IMG/VR virus record: IMGVR_UViG_3300010389_000001
Span: 168,534 to 232,533 of that record
Reading direction: 5' to 3' (one strand)
DNA: 64,000 bases
The notes beneath the pieces are model-generated. The model worked only from the letters and a program-made list of their open reading frames with translations, had not been told where the DNA came from and did not search any database. Positions 23,801-60,316 of the stretch are shown piece after piece. The translations under genes were made by a program, and so were the position numbers. Position 1 is the first letter of the stretch. Every line of letters begins with the position of its first letter.

Positions 23801-25726
23801 AACCTTGATCTTGGAGTTTCATTTCAGGAGAAGGGGGACGTTTTAAAGGGTGATACTGAAACTATTTTGGGTAATTTCGATTCAGTAATTCAAGAGCAAG
23901 CTTCTTTGTTAAATGATATTGAGAATGTTATTGAAGATACAAGCGGTACAGTTAAGCCTGCCGCACAATACACTGCAGATGACTTAAATAACATCCGAGA
24001 TACCTTTAGAAAACAATTCGGAAAAGACCCAGCATCGGGGCTGCCTCTATCGGACAGGCAAGGTCAGGGTTTCACCAATAAAGATTTAGTTTATTCAATA
24101 AGCGATAAGGAAAAAATTGATCAAGCAATAGGCAATGCAGATCAAATAGCAAGAGCATTAAAGAAGGCTATTTCGGATAGAGACAGCTATGTAACAATGC
24201 TTCAGGCTAACCTTCTAAAATCAAAGGAGCTTGAGGAGATAAAGGAGCTTTTGCTTACAGGCGGCAACGAAGACTTTGAGGGATCTCAAAATAGTATATC
24301 TCCATTTTTATCGGATACAGCAGATTTCCTGGCAAAATCGGCAAACGGTCTTCAGACTGCGTCTGATATAATAACTGGGAAGCTAGCAGAGGGAACTGTT
24401 TATGATCACCTGATTGAAGATGATACAAGAAATCTTCTTGGCTATGGATCCGGAAAGAGATTTATCCTAAAAGATGAGCATATAAAGGCAATAACCTTCA
24501 ACGAGAAGCCTCCAGGATTTACAAGACTCGACATTCTTGGCGGCGCACCACTGGGATTCGATCAGGCCTTAAACAGGTCATTTGATGGCCTTTATTTCTG
24601 GGCCGGCGCAACAGATTTTGATTTATGGAGGCAGTACGGATATAAGTCGACGAGCGTATCTCTTCCGTTCGTATCTGATCCAGAGGGCCAAGGGAAGCCT
24701 TATGCTTACCTGAAGCTTGCAATGGAAAAGCTAAATATAAATACCGCAAGCGCGACTGTTGTGGGTAATGAATTTTACCAGCCAGGAGATACGATTTACA
24801 TACCATCGAAGGGCCTGCTTTATTATGTTCAATCTGTAAATCACAGCTTTGATTATGGGTCAAAGAATTTTACAACGACACTAGACTTGCAGTATGGACA
24901 TCCTGCTGGGAATTACATACCAAGCCCTCTTGATGTAATTGGGCAGCAATTGGTTTCAAACATATTGGAAGATCCCGCAATTATTTACAGATCAGATGAA
25001 TCTGACGACAATTACTCTCCTCTCCGCCCCGACTCTTCTCTCGTGTTTCCTACGGGCGGAGCTGGGCCTGCTGAACTGCTGGCCTTCTCTGATAATCAGG
25101 TGAGATTCACAAATATGATGATTGATATAATGGCGAGGATCGCTGGCAGCAATTATCTTCTAATTCGAGGGTTCGTAACTGATGAAAACGCAGATACTAA
25201 AGATACTTTGGAGAAAATGGCTATCGTAAGGTATCTTTTTGAAAATCCAAGTCAGCTAACTCAATCCAATCAGTTTAGCCTGGGGGATGATCTGATAGAG
25301 CCTTTTGCCTCGCTAGGAACAACGACAAGCTCAGTTTTTGGAGGCGGCTCCGTTGGAACGACAAAGACGCTGGCGCCAATGAGGCTGCCGAATAACCTTC
25401 CGGTAACTCCTATAAGTCCTAGGAAAATTATAGAACAGGTATCCTATTTTAAGAGAAGAGATAGGGATACCCTGGGAGAGATAAGATGCCTTGATAGAGA
25501 TTTGGTTACAGCTATGCAGATTGATGCAGGGCAGTTTGAATCAGTATCATCGGATATTGTAAATGGGATCTTTCCGAAGGGAGGCCCCCGCCAGTCCAGC
25601 TGGCTTGACCTAAGAGATGAGGTTTCTGGTTTTAACTTTACATCTTCATTTAAGTCAAACGTAATAGAAGTCGGTGTATTAAAGATACCAAGCAGCCTTT
25701 TAGCTAAGGCTAGCTCAACAGAGTAA
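20852..25726 (+). CDS. baseplate hub protein (gp27/gpD-like, enlarged)
   Basis: 1624 aa; hub-type motifs LEFFANSQGHLEFRPP and TASATVVGNEFYQPGDTIYIPSKGLLYYVQSVNHSFDY...TTTLDLQYG; sits directly before the spike gene. Confidence 0.7.
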   Translation: MSYELSKRIYQTWQQAKSNIINGVSPAYLDVNSHPLINTGASIFFNQDQSVSVTPDTRNHIAMSPEATVLIKKKVFSTLKGSNDLRFMDKTEKMLLRATKALFAYKVQQIRAYESLTKFDSFFQNNNSYSLSLLSSFINESSAILNADENLKQNLAEEGTGFFDDLANILSSSSSVENLTAVNDDIISILKRNAFSEDAGLTTWIVDPENPENYIIGPGTGVIELTMFRGFRTSVGNDSSPSSASLNITYPYRIGNVSEEDIEIAIQEALKGTLGLFNELLNGGISSQSLAGQTAYVDGASIISSAFELSNESLFNTAIDTGYIRERLRTFYLGKPFISASDIVHFYIKGNRTFTDFSSENSTYSEETTESPFDEEYMEIDETILKAEHQLYTAGAIDYEKYKKLRRRQDNSFGMIHVYAGLVTNTSESFSGGFWDLSVSITDNMSWLKWSRFQTEPPISDPKNVLEDPLTPFEFEKDPQGKIISSSRDLLYENKQLLQSGLLSYDSGLLAGQNASEGNLIQGQYNGIGSLRGKKVMQHPSGFVYRWKTGIITATAGFAATDPSEQNRSQSNIWGQNYQLTVTNTVLNNLDIPNILSILIVGQPYNIETFIEQAYTAHNISDRSTRLQNRDALTGVLDVIRKQNVYYGNFHPYRMLSMSVATTQRMLNNAGNRDDANNNIEVLQRKKREIRSRIRALEGGQSVTPIIESLNREIETIDAALREQVKVAVNSERALTSEDRVGIQISLGGSTNLPLYDNEDENNDVTRAMMLVGAQRRIEDVRLNRDRNLFVVSDQYDSADIRPFVLNLNKSGWRLFEGKYQDVWQMCNQASNYLELEFFANSQGHLEFRPPLWNRIPLTILKEAIIKQESEDVEVIPRFITDLFNTRIEALYLQVHTQNVKIVLAALMLGRYPDNTLIPNVKSTGARSLTFFGVELNDQKGVNKAVNNVGNSLSGLPEDSALRLRQTNFETSANTKLGQAFGENLDLGVSFQEKGDVLKGDTETILGNFDSVIQEQASLLNDIENVIEDTSGTVKPAAQYTADDLNNIRDTFRKQFGKDPASGLPLSDRQGQGFTNKDLVYSISDKEKIDQAIGNADQIARALKKAISDRDSYVTMLQANLLKSKELEEIKELLLTGGNEDFEGSQNSISPFLSDTADFLAKSANGLQTASDIITGKLAEGTVYDHLIEDDTRNLLGYGSGKRFILKDEHIKAITFNEKPPGFTRLDILGGAPLGFDQALNRSFDGLYFWAGATDFDLWRQYGYKSTSVSLPFVSDPEGQGKPYAYLKLAMEKLNINTASATVVGNEFYQPGDTIYIPSKGLLYYVQSVNHSFDYGSKNFTTTLDLQYGHPAGNYIPSPLDVIGQQLVSNILEDPAIIYRSDESDDNYSPLRPDSSLVFPTGGAGPAELLAFSDNQVRFTNMMIDIMARIAGSNYLLIRGFVTDENADTKDTLEKMAIVRYLFENPSQLTQSNQFSLGDDLIEPFASLGTTTSSVFGGGSVGTTKTLAPMRLPNNLPVTPISPRKIIEQVSYFKRRDRDTLGEIRCLDRDLVTAMQIDAGQFESVSSDIVNGIFPKGGPRQSSWLDLRDEVSGFNFTSSFKSNVIEVGVLKIPSSLLAKASSTE

Positions 25727-25736: not shown

Positions 25737-28100
25737 ATGTCTGCTGAAGAAATACAAGGTGCCTTGAGCAATCTAAAGATATTTGAGGCTATAGTCGATC
25801 GCGTTGACCCTGATACTGGCAATATTTATATAAAGGCATCTAGTTCATCAGATATAACTGATCCGGATATCATCCCGCCCATTTACTACGGCGGTTTAGA
25901 TGGAACAGGCCTATTTATGCACCCCCGACCGGGTGATGTAGTTATTTGCGCAAGAGTTTTTCCTGGAGGCAAGGGCATAACTCAGGGAATTAGAGTTATT
26001 CCGAAGACATCATTAACCGCCGATAACGAGAATATAGTAAGGAGCGACTCCGAAAACCTCGGCGCGGGAATGCCGGAGTATCCAGCGGTAAAACAGGGAG
26101 AGGTAAAAATAAGAGGCCTCTCTGGCAAGGTGGACATTACGGGAGATGGAGAGCGGGGAGGAGGAGTTTCTGTAGGCACCTTATCTGGCGATGGCTTACA
26201 CGTAAAGGAAAATGCCTCTACAAACTCAGCAGTTACTATAGTTGGAAATTCTTTAAAAGTTACAAATGATGCAACAAGAGTTAGCTCAAGAAATATATAT
26301 AGATATAAGAAAAATGATCCAGAGTCTTCAAATAAAGTATCTGCAAATAGCTATTTTCAAATAGAAGATATTGATAGAGGAAAAAAGAGAGGAACATTTC
26401 CCGGTCTTGAGGCTTCTGAGTCTGCATTATTAAGCGGCTTTAGAAACCCCGGATTATCAGAGTATAGATTTGTTGCAAATGAGTTTTCTGAAACAGATTA
26501 TTTCGAAGGCTGGGATAATGAGTCTGGCAAAAGAGATTCTGAAAATATAAAGAAATTTGCTACCAATAAGCTGATGAGATCTCTTTCTTTTGAGAATGCC
26601 CTTCATCTTGCTCCGCACCAGCTTGTTGAAGTTGTTATTGGCAATGTTGTAAACTCAAGAGGCGAAGCTTTAGATATCAATTATGGCTCAGTAGTTTTGG
26701 GCAACGCGCTTGGACTGCCGGTTGGAGATGGCTCAATATCCCAAGTATATGAGGATGCTAGGCTAAAGTCAAGAAGAAGTATTGGTTATCATTTTCAGCT
26801 GTCCACGAATAGTCTTTCTGCTGAAATATCTAACGATATGGACAATTTTGTTTTTGCCGTAGACAAAGAGGGCGTGCTAAAGGCCAATATTCCAGCGTCA
26901 TCTAACACTGGAAATGTGCTTTATCCAACGGCTGCGGAATTCTACCAGGAAGATTCTGGCAAGGTAAAGACAGAGTATGCGTTTGACAAGAAAAGAGAGA
27001 AGATTCCAATAACTCTTGCGAAAAGGGCTAAGGGCGAAACTGCTATTCTGTATCCGTCTATAATAACGGAAGATAATGAGATCCCCGAAAGATACACTGG
27101 AGTTAGGTTTTCTAACGAAAATAACTATTTTAAAGGATTCTCTGATACTGCAGATCCGCTGGATGCCCAGACTGTAAGGGTTAATCCGACCAAGCATCAT
27201 AATATGTATGCTGCAGCGGAGATGCTAATCGCAAATAAGGTTGTGAGAGTAAACGTTCCGGTCACAAGCGCAGAATGCACAGGCTATATTGCAGGGACTT
27301 CCATAAGGTCAAGCTTTGAAATAAGGGCGGATAGTAAAGACGGAAAATATACATACCCAAATTATATGTCGACTGTAACTATCGCCCCAGATAAGCCAGC
27401 CATAGGGACAGGCGGCGGCACAGTTGTAGCCGGATTAGATTATTCTAAAGAAATAAAATTTGCAAATAGCTTTACGCTTTCCGAGGGAGAGGCCGGGATA
27501 TCTGCAAGGAACATAAGCAAAGATGGTGAAGAAAGAAGCAGCCCGGGTGGAAAGAGCGCGAACATAAATCTGGAAGGTTCCCTTGAGCTTTCGGTCGGAA
27601 AAGACAATTTTGATCAAAAGTCAATTCTTTTAGATACGGCCGGAGGCATGGTTGCATGGTTTGGGAAAGATAAAAATGGTCGATCTATTGTGGCTCAAAC
27701 AGATGGATCAGTCCTGCTGAATGTCGGTGGAATGAATGGAGATACTTTTAATAAGGGCAGCTTTGACTTAAGGGTAAACGTATCAAACAAGGGGTGGGTT
27801 GGAGATGAGCGAGAGGGCATAAATGACTCAGATTATCTTATATCAATAAGCGAGAACGGCCTAGTAATTGCTGGCATGAAAAAGAATGCTCCTATGATCA
27901 TAAGAAATGATGGAGATCTTATGATTGAAAGTTCAACAAAGCTTATTCTTAGCGGCATGTCGGTAGCAGTAAGGGAAGGCTGTAGACCTGAAAGGAAGAC
28001 TCACATAGGCCCTGAGTCTGCTGATACTCCAGAGGCAAATGAAAAGGGAATTCTAGAAATAGGAAGCTGCTACGTTGAAGCTTTTGGCGAAGACTCATAG
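25737..28100 (+). CDS. baseplate central spike (gp5/VgrG-like)
   Basis: N-terminal OB-fold pattern FEAIVDRVDPDTG...GLFMHPRPGDVVICA; C-terminal Gly-rich beta-strand repeats (SILLDTAGGMVAWFGKDKNGRSIVAQTDGSVLLNVGG). Confidence 0.65.
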   Translation: MSAEEIQGALSNLKIFEAIVDRVDPDTGNIYIKASSSSDITDPDIIPPIYYGGLDGTGLFMHPRPGDVVICARVFPGGKGITQGIRVIPKTSLTADNENIVRSDSENLGAGMPEYPAVKQGEVKIRGLSGKVDITGDGERGGGVSVGTLSGDGLHVKENASTNSAVTIVGNSLKVTNDATRVSSRNIYRYKKNDPESSNKVSANSYFQIEDIDRGKKRGTFPGLEASESALLSGFRNPGLSEYRFVANEFSETDYFEGWDNESGKRDSENIKKFATNKLMRSLSFENALHLAPHQLVEVVIGNVVNSRGEALDINYGSVVLGNALGLPVGDGSISQVYEDARLKSRRSIGYHFQLSTNSLSAEISNDMDNFVFAVDKEGVLKANIPASSNTGNVLYPTAAEFYQEDSGKVKTEYAFDKKREKIPITLAKRAKGETAILYPSIITEDNEIPERYTGVRFSNENNYFKGFSDTADPLDAQTVRVNPTKHHNMYAAAEMLIANKVVRVNVPVTSAECTGYIAGTSIRSSFEIRADSKDGKYTYPNYMSTVTIAPDKPAIGTGGGTVVAGLDYSKEIKFANSFTLSEGEAGISARNISKDGEERSSPGGKSANINLEGSLELSVGKDNFDQKSILLDTAGGMVAWFGKDKNGRSIVAQTDGSVLLNVGGMNGDTFNKGSFDLRVNVSNKGWVGDEREGINDSDYLISISENGLVIAGMKKNAPMIIRNDGDLMIESSTKLILSGMSVAVREGCRPERKTHIGPESADTPEANEKGILEIGSCYVEAFGEDS

Positions 28101-28153: not shown

Positions 28154-31100
28154 ATGGCAAGCATTTTAGAGTTAATAGTCGGAGCTATTAATGAGAAAGA
28201 AGATTATACTTCTGTTGAAATAAACTGTGAGGATAAAGGCGGATCCGGCAAAAGCCTTTTCCCGCCAAAAGCGCTGGAGGTTTTATTCCCTGATCAGGGC
28301 AGCGAGAACATTGTGCCTCTTAATGGCGGCTCTGTTGTAAAGATACAGCTGGGTAGAGATATCGATCCCGAGTCATATGCCGGAGTTACCTCGAAGATAA
28401 GCAGCAAGCTCACAGGCATTGGAAGCCTAACTAACTTCGTAAGCAATAAAAGCACTCTAGCAGAAAGTGGATCAAGTCTGGCCGAACTTTATGTAAAGAT
28501 TAACAGCTTTCTTGAAAAGACTGGCTTTTTTCAAAAAAGCCTCAGGTCACTTGGCGTTCCTACTCTTGCCTTATCTTCTGTAATTTCCGAAGATATAGTT
28601 GACTTTGAGGATCTAGAATCAGAAATAGAAAGAACGAGATTACTTGGCGTGCGAAGCAATGAGTTATCTGTAATTGGTTCTTTTAAATTTATACCATTTG
28701 AAACTATTAAGCAAATTTATAAAATAGCAAAAGAGGGCTATGGATATAATGTATCCATATCAGGAAATACATTTTTTGAGATTGCAGAAAAGCTAGATTC
28801 AAATCCTGAAGATGAAGATATTTCAAAAGCAATTTTAAATATATTTCCAATACTCAGAATTGATGATGACTTTATTTTCGGCGATGATATTCAGCAGTTA
28901 ATTGGATACTACACTATATATAAAGATTCAATATACGTAAAAACTCCAGACTTAAGCGCTAGGGATTCTTCCGGTTATTCGATCAACCCATACGACATCG
29001 GCGTAGACAATGTGCAGGATTATGTTAACTTTGCCTTTGAAATGATCACGAGCGAGACAATAACTAGCTCTGGTTATGACGCAATAGCTTTTGATTACTT
29101 AGCTCCACCAAGCATAGAGGTTTTGGATCAAGATTACGAATTCCCGGCGATTAAGGAGAATGGAAGCATCTCTGTGGAGATTAGCGCTAGCGGAGCTGTA
29201 GATGGCGCCTCCTATTATCTTTCGCCAATAGATAAGGCAACTACTGCAAAAATACAGGGCGTTAAAAATGTAAGAAAAGTATCTGATGCCGTAGAATTTT
29301 TTACTGCGCCGAATCTAGCTGTTCCTTATTATTCAGATTCAGAGGGTTTGAAGCCAGTATTCGTTATGGACGACTCATTTACGTCGGATGATTTCGGAAC
29401 GAAGATTAACTACAGCTATACCAACGATGATATAAAAAAGCTTGGAGACCAAATCATTGTATCTCTTGCATCATCTAATATATTTGTTTCATCAACAGAA
29501 ACAGATATTGACAATTATGAAATTGAAATAAACAAAGAAACTATAGGCTTAAGCCAACTGGGCGTACCACTTTTTGTTAGCGAGGGAACCATAGGTGTAA
29601 CAAGCTCTCAATATTGCGGAATTGCAAACAGGCCTGATATATTTCTGGGAAGCAGAGAAGAAGATGCATCTTACAGGAGAAATGATAGAAAGTATTTAAG
29701 CGATAAAATTTACGCCTCGAAAGAGTTCTTTATGTCGCTAACTCCAAATATAGCCAGAGAAGAGCAAATACCAAAACTTTGGATAAAAGCTAAGGGCGGC
29801 CCTAGCAATGCGGATTCGAATGGGCGAAGATTTATAGAATTTGGTGAAGCACAAAATGGCTTCCTGGCCCTGGATGATTTTGGTAGCCCAAATGGAAATA
29901 CAGATGTAGAGTTTGCGTTATATGCTGTCGATAAGCTTGGGCAGATATCAAGAGCTTATGGGCCAAATATTGTCGTAACTAAAAATGAGGTGTTGACTCT
30001 TGGGGTAAGTCCCGATGGATTCAAGGATGATGGAGTTATTATTCAGGTAGGCTCTGCAATGCCCACCCTAACTATAGAGCTTGAAGAGTCAACCAAATTT
30101 GAATCTCTAGTTGCATGGAGCCAAAAGTCTGGTGGAATCAAGTTGTTTGAGATAAATCCATCGGAAGTAGATATAGTAAACACATCTAGTGGATTTACTA
30201 TATCATTTAATGGTATAAGCGTAGAAGAAGTAGTCGGAACAGCCAATGGAGTAGTTTGGCTTGAGATAAATGGATCTGAAAACCGTATTCAGCTCTTTAT
30301 TGCAGATCCGGACGTAACCTCTATTGACCAGCTCCCTGGTCCGCTAACAGAAAAAGTAGAGTTTATTGATCCTAATGGGCTAAAGGCAAAGAGATTTGGA
30401 AAAACAATTGACTCAATACCGATACTCCTAGATGGATCAAACGCTGAAATAACATTAAAGTATAAAAAGAAAATATTTAAGCAAGGCTCAGAAATTTATG
30501 CTTATTTTGCTTTCTGCAAAAATAAGGATGAGGAAAACTACAAAATACTATCCGAAGATGTATCACCTTTGACGGGGACTTCTGGAGGTATTTGCGAAGT
30601 CTTTCTAGATGGCCTTGGGTATTGGGTGCCAACAAATATAGAGTACAAGTTTGGCTCTAGTTATTTCAGCAGAATATCCAACAAGAAGGCTTTGTTGAAG
30701 TTTCCTGGTCCAGCCGGAAATATAAATATAAGTAGATTTGGAAGGTTTACTGGAAATAGTTTGCAGTCGCCAGCATGCATAATCCTGACAAATAGTAAGC
30801 TTAGCCCGGCGCAGGATGGATCATTTATATCATTAATCTCTGCAGATAATGAATATGCAAAAATATCCATAGGATCGAATACTAGTGTTGGCGAAGAAGA
30901 CAGAAAACCAGCATTCATAAATCCTCCCCATATCCTTGGGATGGTTGCCGGTATACCGGACTCTGATCAATTTGCCTCATCGTCTAAGGTTATGGGTGAT
31001 TATTTTCAAGATATAAGAGGCGTTAGTAATGCCGCCCAGATAAGTAATGAAGATGTGGTTGGGCCTATAATTACTTCTGATCGCCTAGATCGATTGGCCC

Positions 31101-34100
31101 TAATTTTCACTGGCTCAAACAATGAAAGAAGAGTATCGAAAGCTTACACTGCATATATAGGGTCAACAAGGGTAAGGAGAAGGCAGCGAGCAGGAAAGAT
31201 AAAAAGGATTTCCAGTGATGAAAACCTTCTCTTAATGAATCTAAAAAAGATAAAAGATGTAAGAGACGTAGGCTGGACCAATATCCGAATAGAGAAAGAA
31301 GATAAAAGATTTAATGTTAATTACGACTCTACCGTGTATAACGTATCGACGGTAAAGTTCTCATGCACTGGAGAAAATCCGGACCCAAACTGCTCAGAAG
31401 ATGAGGCTGACCCTGGAATAACAAAAACCGAAGGAAGTGGCAAGAACGCCATATCTGTACTAAGAAAAGAGAATAAATTTATTCTAGCGAATGATGGAGA
31501 AAATAAGCTCATATGCTCTGAGTCAGCAAATATATTCCCAGATGTAAATAACGGCGGGTTATCACCGTTGCCTTACTATCCCCAGTTTGATGGCACAAGA
31601 TCATTTAGCCTAGGAAGTTGCTCTGGAGGTGGCCTCCAAATATTTGATAAAGGGTCATCTTATGCTTACTTTAGAAATCCGATAAAAATATTTCCAGATA
31701 CAGATCTGCTTCTGAATTTATTTCTTACTGATACTGATACGGTTAACAATCCGTCAGGAGAGATGACCACTGTAAGAAAAAATGGGTCTATAACCGTTAG
31801 TAATAATCTTGACGAGCTAAAAGAAACTTATAACAAAATATCAGGGCAAGCAGATGAGGCGAACGCAAAGCTTGATGAGGCCAGTGCTAAGCTCGAAGAA
31901 GAAAGTCAGAATAGAGATCCCGACGGTCTAAGTCGAACAGAAGAGGAGATAAATCAGGATAAAGAAGATATTCAAAAGTCTAAGGAAATTTACACTGAGT
32001 CTGATGAAAGTGCGCAAGAAGGAATTAGCGCTGTTGAGAAAGCTGAGGCGGAGGAGGCGGCCGCACAACAGGTCCGAGATTCACTGGATCCAAATTCTCC
32101 AGAGGATATAGTGGCTAGCGCAGATGCTGCACTCAAAGATGCGCAAGATGCAGCAAATAAAGCTTTGAACGCAGCAAATGAGGCTGTAGACGGACTTAAC
32201 AACGCCCTCAATGTGCTTGAAAATCTGAATGATGAGCTATCAAGAAAGCTTATGATAGCAAACGGACTAATTAATGAAGCGGAAGATGCGCTAACGGTAT
32301 CAAGGTCCGATAGCTTCTATGGAGTTAGAATAGCTGATATGGCAATAAGCAAGACCGCCGCCATATCGACTGGCAACATTGATTCTTCAAATAAAAATGA
32401 GATATGGCTAAATATCAAAACAAGATTTGATCAGACTGCAGCAATAAAGTTTAACTCACCTGAGATTCTTTCAATAACAACTGATGGAAAAGATTTTCTT
32501 CCAGGTAAGTTCTCTGAGATAAAACTCGGTGATGGAAGAAATATACTTCTGCTTACAACGGTCGGAACAGACAGGAATACGAAATTAGAAATAAATAAAA
32601 TAAGAACAGACTTTACGATACAAAATGAGTTAGGCATACTTAAGGACTTATCTGTAATAATCGAGTCAAAAAATGAGTTCTTATTATCTGGATCAAAACC
32701 ATGTCTTGAGATTGCGCTAACAAATTCAAATCAAGAAAGGCTGCTTTTGTCGAATCTAGACAATAATTTGGCAATTGACCTTCAATCGACATATGAACGC
32801 TTTCTTATAGGCGGAGATAGAGTCAAGAAGGGCGTTCCGAGCACTCTAAAGGACACTCTAGCGGATAATCCTCTTAAGTTTATAAACGTTAGCTTGGAAA
32901 AGGCAAATATTCCAAAAGAATTTATGCAGAGCTTCTGCGATATGTCCTTCCATCTGACAGCGGAACTATCTCTTCAGCTTAGAAATTTTAGAGTTCTTCT
33001 TGTGCCAATCAAAGTAATCCTATGTATAGTTGATGTAATCTGTGCCTTACTTCACCCTATCCGGCTTGCATTCGCAATAATAAGACTATTCCTTTGCCTG
33101 TATGATTTAATCCTACTCTTGCCACAGCTTTCTGTGCCCGCCATGCTAATAAATCTGCTGCTGCATATTCTTGAGTTGTTACTTTGCGTAATTGTAAAAA
33201 TGCTAAGCATCGTTAACGCAATAAACGAAATAATATCAGCATTTGACGTTGCAATCAGGGATAAAAATTATCCGGCAATTATCGCTCTGGAGGAAACACT
33301 AAATGAGCATTTAGCCAGCTTGGAAGCAGATCTGGAGGTGCTTGAGCCTATCCTAACGATACTTGGATTATTCCTTGAGCTTTTGCAGCTTGTTTTCGCA
33401 TTCCCATGCCAGGTTGGATCAGATGAGGATGCGCCCTCCTGCATTGACCCCTCAATGATTGCCGGGATAATACTGAGCAAAGTTGCTCCATCTGGACGAA
33501 TAGAGCCAGACGCCCTACTTCCGATGGCTCAGACTTACACCACGCTTGACCCGGCAGATGGGACAAATGGAAATACTCCAAGCTCGGATAATGATAACGA
33601 CGAGGACAGATTTGGTAGAGTAGACGTTCTGAAAGAAGCCAAAGAAAATGTAGGAGCGACAGTTGTTCCTGATAATTCAGGCTATGGAGGAAGGGAGCTT
33701 ACAGGCCTAACGGATTCCCTGACCGGTGAGCCAAAAGTTATTGGAGAAGGAGGCTTCTTCTCCGGGGATAACGATGAGGATGGAAGGCACGATAACGTTG
33801 ATTATACGACACTTAGATTTGATGAAGGCGGAGATAACTTCCAGGCAACATTTGGTGTGTCATTTACAAAGTCGATAAAGAAGTTTAATCTTTTCACTGG
33901 ACCAGACCCAAGGCTTGTAACTTTCCAATTTAACGAAAGAGGCTTAACTAATCCATTGGCCTTTAACTGGTTCTTAGCAGCTTTCTTTAGAAAAAAGAAT
34001 ATAGACTTGTTCCAGACTCTGGATTCACCGCCGGGCTTTGTAATTCCAGATGGCAACTCCTTAATCGTCAACAGCGATCAAGTAGGCTTTACGTCACCAG

Positions 34101-35998
34101 TTGATGGTTCTTCTGACTTTACAAACGGAGGATTTACTGGATTCTACCTAGAAGAGAGAGCTGGAGGGACTTATCAGCCTAAGCTTTTGACGGCAACAAT
34201 TGAGGTTGAAGTAAGAGGGGTCGATGAAAATGGACAAGAGACGGTGGAGATCGTAGAGGAGACGCAGGATATAGGTCAGATTCCTATGATAGCTCTTGTT
34301 GACGATGAGTTTAACGTTTATTACGTAGAGGAAGGCGATGGCGGAACTGGAGGCATTATCGTTGAGGATATCGACGGAGTTCAGTGCATAACCTCTATTA
34401 GTGCAAAAATGATAAATTATCCAACTGCACCAAAGAAGAAGTTCTCAAGAGAGGATCGCGAAGTCTACAGGTCCGCTGAGGAGCTAAAGCCAAAGAGCGT
34501 TAGGGGCGAGGAGCTTAAAGACGGGAAAACTCTGACCGGCCCAAGAGATGACCCGGCTGTTCCGACGCCACCAATACCTGTTGTTGTGGGCGGACCTGGA
34601 GATATAGATCTCGGGCAGATACTAGTTTATGAGCAAGCCAATGCAAACTGGTTATCTGGAGAGTTTGATCCAGATGAAGGCCTGGAATATGGCAGTGAAT
34701 TCTTTACGAGCGAAGCTGATGGCCAAATATTTAAGCCAACTAAGTTTAATAAAGATTTTGGCTCATTTACCGCGCAGTATATACAAGAAGAAATGGCAGA
34801 GGGAAGAAGTGTTAAGGGGGTGCTAATTGATAATATTTCAGCTCCGCCATTCCCAGAATATGGAGTATATGATTGGGCCAATGGATCAAAGAAAGAGCAG
34901 AATGATTTCGGAGACTCCATTGATTCAATTAAGGTATTTGACTTTCCAACACTTCACTTTGTAGATATGCGCCATCTAAAAGATGATATTCTGGCAGCTT
35001 GCTTTGGGCGGCCTGACTCGCTTCTGCTGGATAATGATGTATTTACCGACGAGGGAATCGGAGATCTAGAGGATCTTATCGAGGAGACACAAGATTGCGT
35101 TCAGTCATTCCTAGACTTCTTCCTATCGGACAAAGAAGTATCTCCAGGGACTCCAGAGGGTGTGGTTCCGAGGATTAGGGCACAGCTTGAGCAGGGCATT
35201 GTTCCGGAGCCAGTTGTTGTAGACAATGTTATTTCAAAATATAATGAGACAAGAGAGTGTATACAGGATAAGGTTGACAGAGCATGCAAGTTTGTTTTGA
35301 ATCCTTTGAACACATCCTTTAAGCTGCTTAATGACATAGACGAATCTCCTCTAACAAATTACATCAATCCAGAGCAGGAAGATCTTGCGAATCTAATTAA
35401 CTATGACTTAGTAGATGAGCTTGAGCTTGACTCAGAGCTTCAAGGGTTCCCGAAAATTACAGGCGCAATGGAATATGCTTCCGGAATAGGCGATTCTGCG
35501 GCAGTTAGAGTTGGCGAAAAGGCAGTAATAAGGATAATCCCAAGAGATTGTTATGACGATACGCTGCCTTCTAATTTGGATCTAACTGATTCTATTAAAA
35601 TACAGATATTAGAAGACGGAACTGGCGGAGCAGCTTTAGTTGCCCCAGGTGAAGGACCCGAGTTATTTGTTAAAAATGAAGGAGAATATACGGCGGCAAT
35701 ATCATCAGACTCTCCTGGAGTGGTTAAGATAAAGGCGACCGTTTGCTCAGTTACTGTTCAGGCGGTCACAGATCAGTCTATTCGCTCTTCAGTTTCTTCT
35801 GCTGAGGTAGACTGCGTTGATGACGATGGCGTAGATCCAGATGACGTTGGCTCGTTTGCCCCGGGAGCTTTAACGAAGGTCGATAGAATTTTAACTATAC
35901 TATTTACTTCTGCTCCGGTAACAATGGCTGCAGAGGGCGATGCCGGAAGGCTCGCGACACCAAGGGACCAGGTATTCGGTACTAATCTGGAGAATTAA
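28154..35998 (+). CDS. 2614-aa multidomain virion-associated protein of unknown function
   Basis: Uninterrupted ORF with TATAAT at 28124-28129 upstream; beta-rich N-terminal half, coiled coil (~31800-32290), long hydrophobic Leu/Ile/Cys segment (~32993-33409) and a C-terminal invasin/Big_1-like Ig pattern (~35495-35760). Confidence 0.75.
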   Translation: MASILELIVGAINEKEDYTSVEINCEDKGGSGKSLFPPKALEVLFPDQGSENIVPLNGGSVVKIQLGRDIDPESYAGVTSKISSKLTGIGSLTNFVSNKSTLAESGSSLAELYVKINSFLEKTGFFQKSLRSLGVPTLALSSVISEDIVDFEDLESEIERTRLLGVRSNELSVIGSFKFIPFETIKQIYKIAKEGYGYNVSISGNTFFEIAEKLDSNPEDEDISKAILNIFPILRIDDDFIFGDDIQQLIGYYTIYKDSIYVKTPDLSARDSSGYSINPYDIGVDNVQDYVNFAFEMITSETITSSGYDAIAFDYLAPPSIEVLDQDYEFPAIKENGSISVEISASGAVDGASYYLSPIDKATTAKIQGVKNVRKVSDAVEFFTAPNLAVPYYSDSEGLKPVFVMDDSFTSDDFGTKINYSYTNDDIKKLGDQIIVSLASSNIFVSSTETDIDNYEIEINKETIGLSQLGVPLFVSEGTIGVTSSQYCGIANRPDIFLGSREEDASYRRNDRKYLSDKIYASKEFFMSLTPNIAREEQIPKLWIKAKGGPSNADSNGRRFIEFGEAQNGFLALDDFGSPNGNTDVEFALYAVDKLGQISRAYGPNIVVTKNEVLTLGVSPDGFKDDGVIIQVGSAMPTLTIELEESTKFESLVAWSQKSGGIKLFEINPSEVDIVNTSSGFTISFNGISVEEVVGTANGVVWLEINGSENRIQLFIADPDVTSIDQLPGPLTEKVEFIDPNGLKAKRFGKTIDSIPILLDGSNAEITLKYKKKIFKQGSEIYAYFAFCKNKDEENYKILSEDVSPLTGTSGGICEVFLDGLGYWVPTNIEYKFGSSYFSRISNKKALLKFPGPAGNINISRFGRFTGNSLQSPACIILTNSKLSPAQDGSFISLISADNEYAKISIGSNTSVGEEDRKPAFINPPHILGMVAGIPDSDQFASSSKVMGDYFQDIRGVSNAAQISNEDVVGPIITSDRLDRLALIFTGSNNERRVSKAYTAYIGSTRVRRRQRAGKIKRISSDENLLLMNLKKIKDVRDVGWTNIRIEKEDKRFNVNYDSTVYNVSTVKFSCTGENPDPNCSEDEADPGITKTEGSGKNAISVLRKENKFILANDGENKLICSESANIFPDVNNGGLSPLPYYPQFDGTRSFSLGSCSGGGLQIFDKGSSYAYFRNPIKIFPDTDLLLNLFLTDTDTVNNPSGEMTTVRKNGSITVSNNLDELKETYNKISGQADEANAKLDEASAKLEEESQNRDPDGLSRTEEEINQDKEDIQKSKEIYTESDESAQEGISAVEKAEAEEAAAQQVRDSLDPNSPEDIVASADAALKDAQDAANKALNAANEAVDGLNNALNVLENLNDELSRKLMIANGLINEAEDALTVSRSDSFYGVRIADMAISKTAAISTGNIDSSNKNEIWLNIKTRFDQTAAIKFNSPEILSITTDGKDFLPGKFSEIKLGDGRNILLLTTVGTDRNTKLEINKIRTDFTIQNELGILKDLSVIIESKNEFLLSGSKPCLEIALTNSNQERLLLSNLDNNLAIDLQSTYERFLIGGDRVKKGVPSTLKDTLADNPLKFINVSLEKANIPKEFMQSFCDMSFHLTAELSLQLRNFRVLLVPIKVILCIVDVICALLHPIRLAFAIIRLFLCLYDLILLLPQLSVPAMLINLLLHILELLLCVIVKMLSIVNAINEIISAFDVAIRDKNYPAIIALEETLNEHLASLEADLEVLEPILTILGLFLELLQLVFAFPCQVGSDEDAPSCIDPSMIAGIILSKVAPSGRIEPDALLPMAQTYTTLDPADGTNGNTPSSDNDNDEDRFGRVDVLKEAKENVGATVVPDNSGYGGRELTGLTDSLTGEPKVIGEGGFFSGDNDEDGRHDNVDYTTLRFDEGGDNFQATFGVSFTKSIKKFNLFTGPDPRLVTFQFNERGLTNPLAFNWFLAAFFRKKNIDLFQTLDSPPGFVIPDGNSLIVNSDQVGFTSPVDGSSDFTNGGFTGFYLEERAGGTYQPKLLTATIEVEVRGVDENGQETVEIVEETQDIGQIPMIALVDDEFNVYYVEEGDGGTGGIIVEDIDGVQCITSISAKMINYPTAPKKKFSREDREVYRSAEELKPKSVRGEELKDGKTLTGPRDDPAVPTPPIPVVVGGPGDIDLGQILVYEQANANWLSGEFDPDEGLEYGSEFFTSEADGQIFKPTKFNKDFGSFTAQYIQEEMAEGRSVKGVLIDNISAPPFPEYGVYDWANGSKKEQNDFGDSIDSIKVFDFPTLHFVDMRHLKDDILAACFGRPDSLLLDNDVFTDEGIGDLEDLIEETQDCVQSFLDFFLSDKEVSPGTPEGVVPRIRAQLEQGIVPEPVVVDNVISKYNETRECIQDKVDRACKFVLNPLNTSFKLLNDIDESPLTNYINPEQEDLANLINYDLVDELELDSELQGFPKITGAMEYASGIGDSAAVRVGEKAVIRIIPRDCYDDTLPSNLDLTDSIKIQILEDGTGGAALVAPGEGPELFVKNEGEYTAAISSDSPGVVKIKATVCSVTVQAVTDQSIRSSVSSAEVDCVDDDGVDPDDVGSFAPGALTKVDRILTILFTSAPVTMAAEGDAGRLATPRDQVFGTNLEN

Positions 35999-36000: not shown

Positions 36001-38037
36001 ATGGCTAATGAAGAGCTTATTGAAAGACTGTCTAGAACCAGTGTAGCTGGATCAAATTACTTAAAAGAAGCACTGTCTAAAGCTTTGGGTGTTTTAGCAG
36101 ATGAGGGAACTGGCGATAATCAAGAAATAGTTCAGGGAATTGAGGCGCCTAACAATAAAGATAGTATAGAGCAGTATAAAAAAATCTTTTCTGAGATATC
36201 AGAAGAATTCAATGGTTTATTTCAAAGCCTTGAAAGTATAAGGTCTTCTTATTTGCCTTATAGCTTTGTTGCTGATGCTATTAACCAAAACAGTGGTCAA
36301 ACAGAGTCTCTGATAGAAATCTCCAGTCAGGAGTCCTTAAAGGAATCCTATGAGAATGCGTTCTTTAGAATGCTTGGCCTGCCCTCTACAGCCGATTTGG
36401 AAGATGATGTCGAATTAATCTGCGTAGATACAAGGGGAAATATAGAGCGACTGAAAAAGGATGAGTATACGCGGAGCATTCTTGACGCTAGGCAAGTTGA
36501 GGTTGGAGACAGAGATACCTCTGTTTCTATCGAGGTTTATAATTTAATTCAAAATCCAGATCCTATTCAAGTATTGGTCGAGAGTGGATATGACGAAAAT
36601 CGAGGAGAAGATCTCGATAAGCCTAGTGACCGTCTCGTCAAAACTCTTGAGATATTAAAAGAGCTTTATGATCTCGGTACTACGAGGGGGGAGAAGGCTC
36701 AGCAGCTTGCACAAGGCAAGTTATCAGCATCTATAGTCAAAGTCCCTGATGCGGAATTAAATGAGCCAGGTAGAGTTAGGCAGAATAAATTGCAAGAAGA
36801 TATCTTTAACTTTACATCTAATTTTAAAGAAGAAAATGATGGAGATGAGAATCCTAATTTTAGCAGCAGTTTTAAGCAAATTATAACCAGTATAGTCGGA
36901 GCTACTGAGCCAACTTATCCTGAGATTGGAGTGGAGCTAAGGGATGCCATATTTGCTCGGTATATATTAGGAATCGAGAGTAATACAATTGGAACGCTCG
37001 ATCAAAGTCCAAACTTTTGGAGATACTGCAGCCTATTATTTCCCCCTGTCCAAGATGGAAGAATTGCCAAATGTATCAATGAGCCGGAAGCAATTGTTGC
37101 AGAGCCGTTTCTGCCAGAAACAATGAGGAAGGTAAATTCAAAGAAGATGAGATCCAGCTTGCTTGAGGCTATAATTAGAATAAGGCTCGATATTGTAACA
37201 GGCACATCGAACCTTCGTCTATCAGATTTCTCTAGACCAGCCTTCTCTTTTGGCAGCGACAATCCTAATGGAGTAAGGTACAATGACATTGCGGAAAATT
37301 ATGGCATATTGGAAGCTTATTTGATTGCAAGATTATTTAACTCATTTTCAGGGATAGCTTCATTCACAAAAGAAAATATAAAGCAAATGCTTATACAGCA
37401 GTCAAATACCGGCCTCGTGCCGGCCCAGGAAGGCAGAAGAGCCAAACAAAATGATGGTTCTGCGGGAGAGGCCAAGAAGAAGGAGGATAGCCCTGAAGTC
37501 AAAAGGCTAAAGGCAACCAAGGCAATAGATGATTCGATGCTTCTTTTGTTAGGGGAAAATAATCTAAATAAAGCTCTAGACTTACAGGAAAATGTAGCAA
37601 GATCTTCTAGTGTTCATGATGCGCATCTTATGGAAATAGTAACTGCGGCAGTCACCTATCCCTCTAAGTGGACAGATAAAAAACTAAAAGAGATTGAAGA
37701 AAGAAATCTTGCTGACGCAAGAACCAAGCTCGATAAAAATAGATCCAAGATAGATAAGACGATGGGCAGATCCAAGGGAGTCGGGGTAATAGATATAATG
37801 TCATATGTTATTGCAATGTTTTCTGTAGAAGAAAAAGTACTACTTAGCCTTCTTAATGAAAGACAATTTTCATATCTAAAGAAGGAATTTCCTAAAGACT
37901 TTTTCAACGATACAGATAGAATAGAGATATCTTCTGCAGTAAATCTATTATCTTCAGCAGCATACGATGCATACGAGCTTTTTAGATCGATTTTATCTGA
38001 TAAACAAGTGGGCGGTTTATTTATTTACGATGACTAA
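36001..38037 (+). CDS. hypothetical helical protein (678 aa), probably virion-associated
   Basis: Starts 2 nt after the previous stop, inside the baseplate block; no family recognised. Confidence 0.7.
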   Translation: MANEELIERLSRTSVAGSNYLKEALSKALGVLADEGTGDNQEIVQGIEAPNNKDSIEQYKKIFSEISEEFNGLFQSLESIRSSYLPYSFVADAINQNSGQTESLIEISSQESLKESYENAFFRMLGLPSTADLEDDVELICVDTRGNIERLKKDEYTRSILDARQVEVGDRDTSVSIEVYNLIQNPDPIQVLVESGYDENRGEDLDKPSDRLVKTLEILKELYDLGTTRGEKAQQLAQGKLSASIVKVPDAELNEPGRVRQNKLQEDIFNFTSNFKEENDGDENPNFSSSFKQIITSIVGATEPTYPEIGVELRDAIFARYILGIESNTIGTLDQSPNFWRYCSLLFPPVQDGRIAKCINEPEAIVAEPFLPETMRKVNSKKMRSSLLEAIIRIRLDIVTGTSNLRLSDFSRPAFSFGSDNPNGVRYNDIAENYGILEAYLIARLFNSFSGIASFTKENIKQMLIQQSNTGLVPAQEGRRAKQNDGSAGEAKKKEDSPEVKRLKATKAIDDSMLLLLGENNLNKALDLQENVARSSSVHDAHLMEIVTAAVTYPSKWTDKKLKEIEERNLADARTKLDKNRSKIDKTMGRSKGVGVIDIMSYVIAMFSVEEKVLLSLLNERQFSYLKKEFPKDFFNDTDRIEISSAVNLLSSAAYDAYELFRSILSDKQVGGLFIYDD

Positions 38038-38096: not shown

Positions 38097-38528
38097 ATGT
38101 CTTTTGATTTAAAAATAAAGAATGGCGATATATCTCTTAATAATGATGGGTCTTTAACTACTGTAGTTGGCAACAATAAGCTTCGTCAGGATATTCTAAA
38201 GATACTCTTAACAGATTTCGGCAGCAATAAGTACCATAAAAGATATGGGAGTTATATTGGGCGCTTAAATATCGGAGATGTTGCCGATAGTCAAATAATA
38301 AGCTTGGATTTAGAGCGTTCAGCTAGAAATGCCGTAAAGAATCTAATGGCGCTCCAGAGGGCTCAGTCTGCAAGGCAAGGTCTGAGTCCAGGTGAAATAA
38401 TCGTTGATATAAACAGCGTTACAGTAGAGCGGGACGAGTTAGATCCAAGACTGTATAATGTAAGTGTATCGGTACTTACAAGAGAGCTGACAGACTTAAC
38501 AACATCATTATCGGTAAGGATTGCTTAG
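38097..38528 (+). CDS. baseplate wedge subunit, gp25/gpW-like
   Basis: 143 aa; MSFDLKIKNGDI...LRQDILKILLT...YHKRYGS...IVDINSVTV...YNVSVSVLT; directly before baseplate J. Confidence 0.85.
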   Translation: MSFDLKIKNGDISLNNDGSLTTVVGNNKLRQDILKILLTDFGSNKYHKRYGSYIGRLNIGDVADSQIISLDLERSARNAVKNLMALQRAQSARQGLSPGEIIVDINSVTVERDELDPRLYNVSVSVLTRELTDLTTSLSVRIA

Positions 38529-38536: not shown

Positions 38537-41500
38537 ATGGCAAATTTTAGATCATTCAGCGAAATCGTTTCCTCGATGATACAGAGGCTTGGCTTATCAC
38601 AGCCTAATCTGGATACAAAGCCGGGCACTGTTTCTAGGGATGTTTTCATTGACCCTGTTGCCGATCAAATATCGAGACTCTATTCAACCTTATCTGTTGT
38701 TTCCGAAAAGCAATCTCTTGCGACAACTTCTGGTGCAGATTTAGATCGGTTGGCATCAAACTTTGGCGTAACAAGAAATACAGGCTCATCTGCAAACGGA
38801 CTTGTTATTTTTGCAACAAATAACTTGGCATCCGATATATCCATACCAAATGGCACTGTGGTTACCGCAAGAAATGGTGCGAGCTTTAGAACCATTGGAA
38901 ACTTTGTAATGGCATCTGCAGATAAAAATAGATACGCTGCGAATGCAACGAGGCTGAGAAGAGCGCTAAATATTGCGGGTTTAAATAGCACTTATGTAAT
39001 TGAAGTTCCGATACAGGCAGAAAGACCGGGAACTACAGGAAATGTTTCTTCGCTGCAAATTGTGAGAACAAATCTTCAGGCGACTTTATCTGTAATCAAC
39101 CTTGTTGCAACTACGGGCGGAATAAACCGCGAAACAGACGCTTCTTTTAGAGCAAGAATTCTATCTGTATTTAGTGGGGCAAATATAGGGACTTCTCTGG
39201 GGTATCGAAATGCCCTGCTTGGAGTGGACGGTGTCGTTGACGCGCTAGTCGTTGAACCGGGCAACTCTCTAATGCTCAGAGACGGAACAGAGACGATAGC
39301 CCTAGAGGATGGAACCAGCAGAATTCTGAATTCAGGGACGGGCGGAAAAGTTGATATATACGTTCTCGGAAGAAAGGTGGAGCCGGTAACTGAATCTTAT
39401 ATATTTACCGATTTCTCTGGAACCGGAGATATTAGCGATGAAAGAAATGATTTTATACTTGGTCAGGGAAATCAGGATAAGACGAGGACATCAGAGGAGA
39501 GAAGAGTTATAGCCTTTAGGGACGGAACTCTTCCGGCGCAACCAATAGACTCTATTGTTTCACTAGTAGGAAGTCAATCTGGCCCATTGACAGAAGCCTT
39601 TGTTGATGAGAATGGAGTTAAAAGAGGTAACTTCGAGTTAAAAAAAGACTTTAATGAAGACACGGGAGGCAGCCCGTTCGGCTTTGATAAGATTAGTTAT
39701 ATATCGAACATAAAGAAAGTAAGAGCAGAGCCTATAATTAAGGGAGAAAGATTCTCTCTAGACATACCAAGTTTTACCGACATTGATGTCCTTAACGGAG
39801 TCTATCTGGATAGAGTAGAGTCTGGAGAAAATGCCGATGTTAGCTCCGCTGGATCTAACTTCATTAAGCTAAAGCACGTTCCGGTAGTCAAGGTTACAAG
39901 CGTTCAGAACAAGACTACTGGTGAGATCTACTCTGTAGTTAATCAGAATTTAGAGAATGGACTTAACTACACGGGGCTGATAGAAATAAGCGGAAGATCA
40001 CTGCCTAATGCTTCGAACATTCTGAGTGTAAATTATACTTGGCGACAATTCTACGATAAGAATATTGATTTTTCCGGCGGAGATGACTATCAGTTTAAAG
40101 ATCCTAATGCTGGAGATGTTATAGATTGGAGTCAGACCGGAGGTATATTTGAAGAGGAGTCCGTAATATCAAGAACGGCTGACGATATAGACTATGAAGT
40201 AGAGCTTGATTACGATGTAAATAGAATTATATCTATCTATACAAAGGATATTGCCCAAGCAACGATCGAGTCCATCACAAGGCCTGACGGAACGACTGGA
40301 GTTGGAGCAAGATTGTCCCTAGACGATGAGGCTGTCACAAACATAATATCAATCAGAAGGGTTTCCGACGCCCTAGAGTTATATAATACGGAAAAGGCCG
40401 ATGGAGAATTTTCGTCTAGAGATATTTATCTTCCGTCTGACTCACAGGGCCTGATTGGTGATGAGATAGTAGTTGATTATAATAAGGTGGAGATATTTGA
40501 CTTAGACGGTACAGACGGATCATATTACGGAAATGTAGCGGTCCTACCATCCGAGGGCATCCTTGAGGCGGAGGGTCTTACCGAGCTGGTAGATTCAACG
40601 TTCTTGTCCGAAGACCCCGTGTACGTAACTTACGTTTATGATTCATCTTCAGTCTATCCTGCAACTCAGCTAACTGACCTCCCAATAACTGGTGACGACA
40701 ATTCTGATACCCTCTCTAGTGCCTCTGGGTCTGGGGCTGCCGGCTCCAATCAGCCTATATTCTTTGATCGCACTTCTGATTTTTCAGCAAATCCAATAAA
40801 TAGATTTGGCCCGACTTATCTATCTGTTTCGGTATCCGGAACAACGTCACCTGGTAAGATCAAAATTTTGGGCACATCCCTAAATGTGTATACACTAGAT
40901 ATAGTTGCAGGAGTAAGCATATCTGGCAGCAAGGTTGACTTGGAAACGGAAATAAAAAATGCACTTGGATTAAATGAGCTAAATGAAGACATCGGTATAG
41001 CCAGGATATTCTCAGTTTCAAAGCTTGATGGCAATGGTGATCCCAGCGATTTATTTAGCAAAGTTGGACACGGCCTATCTTCGATCGAGTTTACGGTTGG
41101 CACGGCAAGCTTGGATCAGACGCTTAACAATTATGAGTTTACGATACCGTCCAACGAGGTCAATCGCAACATCACTCTGTCATCATCAGATAGGGTTAGA
41201 GTAGAGCTTTGTGTTTATAATAGAAACGAGTCTGAAGAGCTTTTCTTTAGCGCTCCATCGGAGAGGACCACATCTAATCGTTACGGAAGAATCGCCAGCA
41301 TATCGGTATCATCAGGTTTTCGGGATAACATCGGCGGATTGACTGGCTCAGTATCTATTGCTTCATTAAATCAGCCACTATTGTCTAGCCAGTATCAAAT
41401 AGATTACGATTTTGTTTCTCCAAAAGAAGGCGAAAGAATTACGGTATCATACAATATAAATAAGCTTATACTTGATGCCACGAGGGAAATCGAAAGAGTC

Positions 41501-60310: not shown

Positions 60311-60316
60311 TTCGTT

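Follow-up and report, generated by a model that had tools for sequence, protein, structure and literature searches.

To our knowledge, how contractile-tailed phages get across the cytoplasmic membrane has only recently begun to be resolved, and for T4 alone, where the tape measure protein mediates it. In T4 and numerous other phages, the transmembrane segment of this protein serves as an anchor or conduit. In the virion the helical segment is shielded, and it is thought to enter the inner membrane after ejection and there to form or seed the DNA channel. In the T4 tape measure protein a transmembrane helix is predicted, and the protein co-purifies with membranes; such helices are reported to be common in tape measure proteins (bioRxiv 10.64898/2026.03.06.709160).

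The putative tail protein described here, P0001, resembles tape measure proteins of myoviruses and siphoviruses (T4 gp29 residues 205-518, T5 pb2, lambda gpH) in carrying a hydrophobic helical segment. It differs from them in that its gene comes after the spike and not before the tube initiator, in having four hydrophobic helices with a cysteine and proline signature where tape measure proteins have one or two, and in that the segment is embedded among beta-sandwich domains while a separate tape measure-like gene exists. The colicin pore domain, the diphtheria toxin T domain, the Bcl-2 family and ClyA hold one or more hydrophobic hairpins among amphipathic helices in their soluble forms, and a hydrophobic helical hairpin with amphipathic helices on its flanks is present in P0001. 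By contrast, P0001 carries two hairpins in place of one, together with five invariant cysteines, and is a giant protein encoded in a virion module. The original prediction had likened its layout to that of T3SS translocators and alpha-pore-forming toxins; kinship with T3SS translocators, ClyA or colicins was not supported, the matches being to generic helical bundles (ClyA, Z 9.6, rmsd 12.2 A). That no known pore-former was matched by fold or sequence in the databases searched counts against a membrane reading.

T6SS spike effectors (prePAAR/Eag class; VasX) are similar in having a spike-adjacent gene, hydrophobic helices and a neighbouring gene that possibly shields them, whereas P0001 has no PAAR or prePAAR motif and no toxin domain, and its gene has a fixed, syntenic position, unlike cargo that varies. 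The podovirus ejection (pilot) proteins (T7 gp14-16; P22 gp7, gp20 and gp16) are also large; for these virion proteins it has been proposed that they refold across the envelope to deliver DNA. They reside in the capsid, and their genes are among the head genes, whereas the P0001 gene lies in a contractile-tail baseplate block, and no sequence or fold similarity to them was found in PHROGs or in fold searches of the PDB and BFVD. The Big_1-type domains of invasin, intimin and FdeC and the Ig-like domains of phage virions have the same fold as residues 2447-2530 of P0001, and the N-terminal half of P0001 also contains Ig/IPT-like sandwiches, as in phage virion Ig-like domains. The domain at 2447-2530 is a single accessory domain and is uninformative on the function of the hydrophobic module.

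The gene and its slot in the baseplate block

The window, a stretch of 64,000 nucleotides, is part of a 232-kb IMG/VR myovirus contig from an uncultured marine jumbo phage. P0001 is encoded in a baseplate block by an open reading frame at 28154-35998 on the + strand that starts with ATG, has no internal stop and encodes 2614 aa. This reading frame and the sequence strings quoted from it in the original prediction were all located where that prediction had them. It had also described a protein without a signal peptide, and none is apparent; the N-terminus is polar. P0001 has 34 full-length homologues, which are metagenome-derived and 31-62% identical to it. No sequence match to P0001 was found in Pfam, PHROG, NCBIfam or the PDB, and searches of Pfam, PHROGs and NCBIfam with P0001 and three neighbours gave nothing usable. 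A tblastn search with P0001 and two short homologues against 50,697 GenBank phage records returned zero matches. Sequence and profile searches of the PDB with the whole P0001 family and with the module gave only coiled-coil or designed-helix noise. Fold searches with both AlphaFold2 models (Foldseek and VIA-align in the PDB; BFVD; AFDB clusters; ESM Atlas) returned only Ig-like and generic helical-bundle matches, with queries of 1200 residues, a size that reduces sensitivity for single domains.

The lineage of P0001 consists of large, uncultured marine and aquatic myoviruses and is compatible with the 'moraphage' lineage (PMC12619734). Features of the contig that match that lineage are a class II aaRS, several glycosyltransferases, T4-like tail genes and the lack of HSP70. 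In a survey of this possibly related lineage, the tape measure gene could not be found (PMC12619734).

The gene order at the locus is tape measure-like, tube initiator, hub, spike, P0001, a 678-aa helical protein, gp25-like and gp6-like. The tape measure candidate (639 aa; 17943-19862, + strand) matches Pfam TMP_3 with an E value of 0.005. It has no hydrophobic helix (maximum 19-residue Kyte-Doolittle mean 1.28, positive insertion energy), and neither does its orthologue in a related locus, L007. The baseplate hub candidate (1624 aa; 20852-25726, + strand) is Mu gp44/gpP-like as judged from a weak atlas feature match and its position, and has orthologues in loci L001, L003, L005 and L007. The original prediction placed P0001 beside the spike. 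In agreement with this, the protein encoded just upstream (787 aa; 25737-28100, + strand) is a central spike candidate of the gp5/gpV type on atlas features; it has no Pfam match and its language-model features group it with the Gp5_OB and Phage_base_V clusters (0.92, 172-175 shared features). Neither the spike candidate nor the hub candidate had a match in the PDB. Orthologues of the spike candidate occupy the same slot in related loci.

Downstream of P0001 is the gene for the 678-aa helical protein, P0036 (36001-38037, + strand), which has a semi-hydrophobic C-terminal helix and 71 homologues. A search with the P0036 profile recovers a counterpart encoded behind the module protein in L007 (E 6e-18) and in L005 (E 4e-9), hydrophobic windows included. 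A predicted complex of P0036 with residues 1560-1800 of P0001 scored 0.00, with a pLDDT of about 50 for the partner, and speaks neither for nor against an interaction. The next two genes encode a gp25-like sheath initiator (38097-38528, + strand; Pfam PF10934, E 3.7e-7) and a gp6/Baseplate_J-like protein (38537-41857, + strand; Pfam PF04865, E 6e-26).

The block of hub, spike, P0001 or its counterpart, partner, gp25 and gp6 is collinear and orthologous in five independent loci, in an order like that of Mu gp42-48. The hydrophobic module recurs in proteins of ~2600, ~2000, ~1500 and 620-830 aa, in the same slot every time, and a homologue of P0036 is always encoded downstream of it. The synteny check suggested with the original prediction shows that the P0001 gene is real and conserved, and that it has a fixed slot in a baseplate-hub block across very divergent phages.

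The hydrophobic module

The conserved module comprises residues 1585-1777 (32906-33484, + strand) and has seven predicted helices, four of which are membrane-competent (1613-1633, 1635-1655, about 1661-1683 and 1730-1752). Kyte-Doolittle means over 19 residues exceed 1.6 in P0001 at 1611-1697 and 1729-1755. With means of 2.4-2.7, the module is the strongest hydrophobic stretch of the tail gene module. Among the 23 large + strand open reading frames checked between positions 223 and 56598, windows above 2.0 occur in the P0001 module only. The sheath and a 3245-aa reading frame each just exceed 1.6, and two small upstream reading frames also exceed it. On the Wimley-White octanol scale, insertion of each of the four segments is favourable, at -4.7 to -11.1 kcal/mol. 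The long, proline-containing hydrophobic segment of the original prediction is confirmed, with helices bounded by P1635, P1657, P1662 and P1751, and its membrane competence is borne out on these admittedly crude hydrophobicity scales.

The module has the signature C-x5-C-x3-[NH]-P ... [RK]-x3-C-x2-[DE]-x5-P ... P-C-x10-C. Near-invariant positions in 113 module sequences are C1624, C1630, C1648, C1752, C1763, D/E1627, R/K1644, P1635 and P1657. The module is 75-86% identical to that of P0001 in 28 aligned full-length homologues, whereas identity is only ~30% over the greater part of the N-terminal two thirds. In distant relatives it is 79% and 64% identical, compared with 47-58% for gp25 and gp6 from the same pairs of genomes. 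Judged from these alignments, the module forms the family core, being its best-conserved part and the sole part kept in every size class. An ESM Atlas feature search with it found unnamed viral clusters only. The module is a new, unannotated family of four-helix, cysteine-studded domains.

Two features of the module sit uneasily with a membrane reading. Conserved charged residues lie within its hydrophobic helices. In addition, ~45 acidic, amphipathic residues separate the third and fourth of these helices (TM3 and TM4), and this linker would need to cross the membrane or lie on it.

The AlphaFold2 pLDDT of module helices 1585-1655 is only 53-65. In the monomer model, helices 1657-1754 are bundled with amphipathic helices at 2299-2378, a packing inferred from helical-bundle superpositions spanning model residues 246..966. 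This predicted packing would fit a latent pore-former and a permanently buried core equally well.

Flanking domains of the giant protein

The N-terminal half (residues about 37-1110; 28262-31483, + strand) is predicted to form an alpha/beta domain at 38-300 followed by several Ig/IPT-like beta-sandwiches (AlphaFold2 model me9a7496386bb, pLDDT 75.5, pTM 0.77). Its fold matches are generic Ig-array and IPT/TIG structures only, and the short homologues are without it. An acidic helical region rich in Ala, Glu, Asp and Asn follows at residues 1216-1400 (31799-32353, + strand). The original prediction had read a coiled coil here as part of a core membrane device. The coiled coil stood at about 1320-1400, where the 3.5-residue hydrophobic periodicity is strong (power 2.9 versus 0.25 +/- 0.25; none of 2000 shuffles as high). 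Heptads are marginal at 1216-1262 (p about 0.05), and the acidic middle has no clear heptads. Searches of the PDB and NCBIfam with the region gave coiled-coil-type noise only. Its place in a core device is not supported, because the coiled coil lies about 277 residues before the module and is restricted to the largest size class, of 2300-3100 aa.

A beta-sandwich domain (residues 1436-1524; 32459-32725, + strand; AlphaFold2 model mb8171dc745f7, local pLDDT about 80) precedes the module. Two domains separate the module from the C-terminal Ig-like domain, and both are unmatched. The first, a beta-rich domain at residues 1834-2149 (33653-34600, + strand; pLDDT 75-88), had no fold match in the PDB, BFVD, AFDB clusters or ESM Atlas. 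The second is an alpha/beta region at residues 2153-2378 (34610-35287, + strand) with amphipathic helices predicted by AlphaFold2 at about 2299-2378.

An invasin-type pattern had also been claimed for the C-terminus. In AlphaFold2 superpositions, residues 2447-2530 (35492-35743, + strand) do have this fold: the model matches invasin 1cwv with a Z of 10.1 and an rmsd of 2.3 A over 93 residues (Foldseek probability 1.0), and further matches include FdeC and InvD (4e9l, Z 9.6; 5ldy, Z 9.1) and the Invasin_D3 and Big-1 clusters of AFDB. The claim did not hold at the level of Pfam profiles, as Big_1 and Invasin_D3 gave no match in P0001. A short homologue, P0173, has sub-threshold Pfam matches to Invasin_D3 (E 1.7e-6; 28.9 bits versus a cut-off of 33) and Big_1. 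Phage Ig-like domains are generally linked with the virion surface, and the many Ig-like domains of P0001 fit a virion-surface protein. A protein of 290 kDa would be hard to accommodate on or in a spike, which is a point against a membrane reading.

Possible roles of P0001 in infection

Our leading reading, to which we give a little less than an even chance, is that P0001 is a fixed, spike-proximal virion component with a latent membrane-insertion module. We infer its virion presence, shielded state, membrane insertion and conduit role from the location of the gene and the properties of the module. P0001 would be a fixed structural part of the baseplate centre, near the spike. Its core would be the helical module of ~190 residues, with two hydrophobic hairpin-like pairs of helices of ~21-25 residues each; the first hairpin seems to be closed by an acid-base pair that is conserved universally, and five near-invariant cysteines lie in the module. 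In the virion, the hydrophobic helices may be kept soluble by the downstream amphipathic helices and possibly also by the 678-aa neighbour. Sheath contraction would drive the spike through the envelope and free the module, which probably enters a host membrane during infection. Once inserted, it may anchor the tip of the tube or contribute to the DNA conduit. The conduit role appears to be left unfilled at this locus because the tape measure candidate lacks the usual membrane segment. Since the number of hydrophobic helices is even, neither large flank would need to leave the side on which insertion begins. In the giant version, the N-terminal Ig array of 1400-1600 residues and the coiled coil would be additions specific to this lineage, probably spacer or adhesion parts exposed at the surface.

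A more far-reaching proposal, which we regard as doubtful, is that this lineage shifted membrane breaching from the tape measure to a metastable, clasped, two-gene device mounted on the spike. The four helices would be held by a cysteine clasp (metal or disulfide) together with the interhelical salt bridge. When the sheath contracts, they would snap into the membrane of the host and open a DNA conduit, much as viral fusion proteins or alpha-pore-formers do. On this proposal P0001 would represent a class of phage entry proteins not described before, as well as a new protein domain.

A serious rival, if on balance a somewhat unlikely one, is that P0001 is a purely structural baseplate protein in which the hydrophobic helices are permanently buried as an oligomerisation core and never meet a membrane. 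One such core would be a bundle, trimeric or hexameric, that surrounds the hub and spike and is perhaps held together by metal or disulfides through the invariant cysteines. The structural location of the gene suits such a role, and so does the bundling of helices 1657-1754 with 2299-2378 by AlphaFold2. Extreme conservation on every helix face fits tight protein-protein packing, and invariant charged pairs and five cysteines in the helices are unusual for lipid-facing segments. However, the insertion energies and the proline-bounded helices of 21-25 residues are those of transmembrane hairpins, and hydropathy means as high as those of the module are seldom seen in soluble cores. The partner P0036 also retains a hydrophobic helix, and a buried core would leave the conduit role vacant.

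It is improbable that P0001 is a membrane-anchored morphogenetic factor outside the finished virion, with the module tethering P0001 and its partner to the infected cell's cytoplasmic membrane, where hub and baseplate assembly is organised. Four membrane-competent helices, a partner with one hydrophobic helix and the position of the gene pair among hub genes are consistent with this idea. However, the N-terminus has no signal or anchor, 2614 aa is very large for a chaperone, and an even number of helices would leave the two huge flanks on the same side. Moreover, Ig-like arrays and an invasin-type domain typify exposed virion or extracellular proteins and not cytoplasmic assembly factors.

The original prediction had also offered a tail-delivered effector, that is, a toxin on the spike like the T6SS spike-bound effectors with transmembrane domains. 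The adjoining spike gene, the hydrophobic helices and a downstream gene that could encode a chaperone are in keeping with this. Effector cargo is normally variable. We consider an effector very unlikely because P0001 has one fixed slot with collinear, orthologous neighbours in deeply divergent phages, and the hydrophobic module is its most conserved part. In addition, no toxin domain was recognisable in P0001 in Pfam, PHROG or NCBIfam, and no PAAR motif (PF05488) was found in P0001, or at E <= 1 across the contig, which is about 68% complete.

That P0001 is a true tape measure protein or a displaced fragment of one is scarcely credible despite weak PHROG matches to four tape measure families (9 member-family matches among 39 module sequences, best E 0.002) and a PDB profile match to a tape measure protein across the coiled coil (E 0.025), given the separate TMP_3-like gene of 639 aa in the canonical place ahead of the tube initiator, the position of the P0001 gene after the hub and spike, the beta-rich rather than extended helical prediction by AlphaFold2 for the N-terminal ~1100 residues and 1834-2149, and an hhalign probability of 1.4% for the module against T4 gp29. 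Homology to tape measure proteins is unsupported.

In P0001, a large group of uncultured aquatic jumbo phages carries a different candidate for membrane crossing, encoded next to the spike and accompanied by a conserved partner. If the module is membrane-active, it would be a new entry module; the homologues of 620-830 aa, or the module of ~190 aa alone, would provide a compact testable unit. If it is a buried core, it would still be the defining structural signature of the hub of these phages. Either way, the module signature can be used for annotating genomes of this kind.

Gene neighbourhood of the 2614-aa protein

The 2614-aa protein, P0001, is encoded by one uninterrupted ORF of 2614 codons at window positions 28154-35998 (+). 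The source IMG/VR record is 232,533 bp long, and the window is its last 64 kb. CheckV puts its completeness at approximately 68%, no terminal repeat was found in the 232,533 bp, and nearly all of its genes lie on one strand. The ORF is surrounded by a contractile-tail gene block that includes a sheath gene (11131-14406) with a weak Phage_sheath_1C match, a TMP_3-like, Gly/Ala-rich protein of 639 aa (17943-19862), and a tube-initiator-like protein (19862-20821), followed by a 1624-aa protein with features like those of Mu gp44/gpP hubs. Between this and P0001 is a 787-aa protein whose features cluster with Gp5_OB and Phage_base_V spikes, so the original prediction that P0001 lies beside the spike is reasonable. 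Directly downstream are a 678-aa helical protein (36001-38037 (+)), a gp25-like sheath initiator, and a Baseplate_J protein (E 6e-26).

After the gp6-like gene come a protein of 3245 aa that contains a LamG/concanavalin-like domain (41866-51603), a 1521-aa ORF (51652-56217), and a small ORF of 118 aa. The 3245-aa and 1521-aa proteins are likely to be giant components of the wedge or fibres, and both have orthologues in L005 and L007, loci encoding 755-aa and 1513-aa versions of P0001. The tail module is followed by a run of six family-1 glycosyltransferase genes, all complete (within 56641-63998), and by a 3'-open ORF that reaches the contig end (63138-63998). The glycosyltransferases may have a role in virion or DNA glycosylation; four core glycosyltransferase groups are described for the possibly related "moraphage" lineage (PMC12619734). 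Upstream of the sheath gene, at 1258-9440, are two large ORFs of 1519 and 1207 aa without any family match. Outside the window, the phage contig also carries the core of a class II aminoacyl-tRNA synthetase (G000:C1:47632-48582; tRNA-synt_2, E 6e-77); no HSP70 was found on the contig.

Domain layout and the conserved hydrophobic module

All sequence strings quoted in the original prediction were found in P0001. Two AlphaFold2 runs on family alignments predicted an alpha/beta domain (residues 38-300), several Ig/IPT-like sandwiches (~320-1066; N-terminal model pLDDT 75.5, pTM 0.77), a beta-sandwich (1436-1524), seven helices at 1585-1777, a beta-rich domain (1834-2149; pLDDT 75-88), an alpha/beta region (2153-2378), and an Ig domain (2447-2530); the tail after it is disordered, and the very C-terminus is conserved. 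Residues 1216-1400 form an acidic region of helix and coiled coil. The predicted coiled coil was confirmed at ~1320-1400 (heptad power 2.9 versus 0.25 +/- 0.25; 0/2000 shuffles as high) and was marginal at 1216-1262. It occurs at a constant offset in the largest size tier only, so it does not belong to the core. The proposed C-terminal invasin-like domain held as a modelled fold, with residues 2447-2530 superposing on invasin, FdeC, and InvD (Z 9-10, rmsd 2.3-2.7 A), but a Pfam search of P0001 did not detect it. A short homologue gave sub-threshold Invasin_D3 and Big_1 matches. Searches of PDB, BFVD, AFDB clusters, and ESM Atlas with the models returned no match except Ig-like folds.

We found 34 full-length homologues (31-62% identity) in metagenomes, many from Tara or other marine samples, on contigs of up to 348 kb; one is mis-binned as "Pacearchaeota". 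The gene is present on 24 IMG/VR contigs. Across 28 aligned full-length homologues, identity to P0001 is ~30% for most of the first two thirds of the protein and 40-65% for much of the last third, and it reaches 75-86% at residues 1600-1755. The module (1585-1777) is 79% and 64% identical to two distant relatives, compared with 58% and 48% for gp25 and 58% and 47% for gp6 in the same genome pairs. An exhaustive profile search gathered 232 proteins in tiers of ~2400-2800, ~2000-2170, ~1500-1600, and 620-830 aa. Within the 620-830-aa tier, the module is the only part that aligns significantly; it lies ~67 residues in from the N-terminus, and the ~450 residues after it include a linker rich in Cys, a region with a shared G-C-H-P motif, and an Ig domain.

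The seven helices (1585-1611, 1613-1633, 1635-1655, 1657-1702, 1706-1728, 1730-1754, and 1766-1777) contain the hydrophobic stretch noted originally, which is by far the strongest in P0001 and in the tail module. Wimley-White octanol energies are favourable for four segments even when charged residues are fully counted. Among + strand ORFs of at least 100 aa on the whole contig, only one other has at least two strongly hydrophobic windows. This 145-aa ORF has two (G000:C1:42340-42789, outside the window) and may encode a membrane protein, perhaps holin-like. Among 113 module sequences, C1624, C1630, C1648, C1752, and C1763 are each present in 106-113, and P1635 and P1657 in 112-113. Position 1627 is acidic in all 113 and position 1644 basic in 111. 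These two residues flank the N-P turn joining the first two hydrophobic helices, 7 residues on its N-terminal side and 10 on its C-terminal side respectively, and therefore probably form an interhelical salt bridge. H1600 and H1671, found in the large tiers, lie with the five cysteines in or next to the hydrophobic helices (1595-1763; window 32900-33450), an arrangement suggestive of a metal site or a disulfide clasp. The module represents a domain family not described before; its signature is sharp, and it has no annotated relative.

A conserved gene pair in the hub-spike slot

In L005, L007, and two loci with distant full-length relatives (L001 and L003), the module protein always follows hub and spike orthologues and precedes a 511-684-aa protein and then gp25-like and gp6-like genes. 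L005 has an additional acidic 108-aa ORF between spike and module protein (6708-7034) that is absent from the window. The profile of the 678-aa protein matches the downstream genes in L007 (E 6e-18) and L005 (E 4e-9). These partners (window 36001-38037; L005 9381-11078; L007 14551-16086) share a hydrophobic or semi-hydrophobic helix near the C-terminus, with a GVGxIDxxxxxIAxF region. Therefore, the module protein and the downstream helical protein are a conserved gene pair.

The gene is kept in the hub-spike slot over wide divergence. This argues that P0001 is a structural or entry component rather than variable cargo, and makes the tail-delivered effector of the original prediction unlikely.

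Readings of module function

The best-supported mechanism, put forward tentatively, is a latent membrane-insertion module. The hydrophobic helices would be shielded inside the virion, released upon contraction, and inserted into a membrane, where they might act as a conduit or anchor, a role held elsewhere by the membrane segment of the tape measure protein (TMP). A recent study of T4 found its TMP to carry a predicted transmembrane helix and to copurify with membranes, and reports such helices as common among TMPs (bioRxiv 10.64898/2026.03.06.709160). No hydrophobic helix was found in the TMP candidate at 17943-19862 (maximum KD19 1.28) or its L007 orthologue.

The main rival holds that the module stays buried for good, as an oligomeric core. 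The monomer model, conserved charges, and cysteines are compatible with burial and with membrane insertion alike. Helical-bundle superpositions across model residues 246..966 imply packing of helices 1657-1754 against amphipathic helices at ~2299-2378. A stronger version of membrane insertion, in which P0001 is a spring-loaded entry device, is less likely. The likeness in layout to T3SS translocators or alpha-pore-formers, drawn earlier, did not extend to kinship: PDB searches and fold comparison found no relationship to T3SS translocators, ClyA, or colicin. For TMPs, 39 module sequences gave nine weak member-family matches to tape-measure PHROGs (best E 0.002), and hhalign of the module against T4 gp29 gave a probability of 1.4%. 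No PAAR match turned up on the ~68% complete contig at E <= 1.

As a membrane-insertion module, it would be a case of a known concept, the tail-borne membrane-active segment, in a new carrier protein, at a new position, and with a new architecture.
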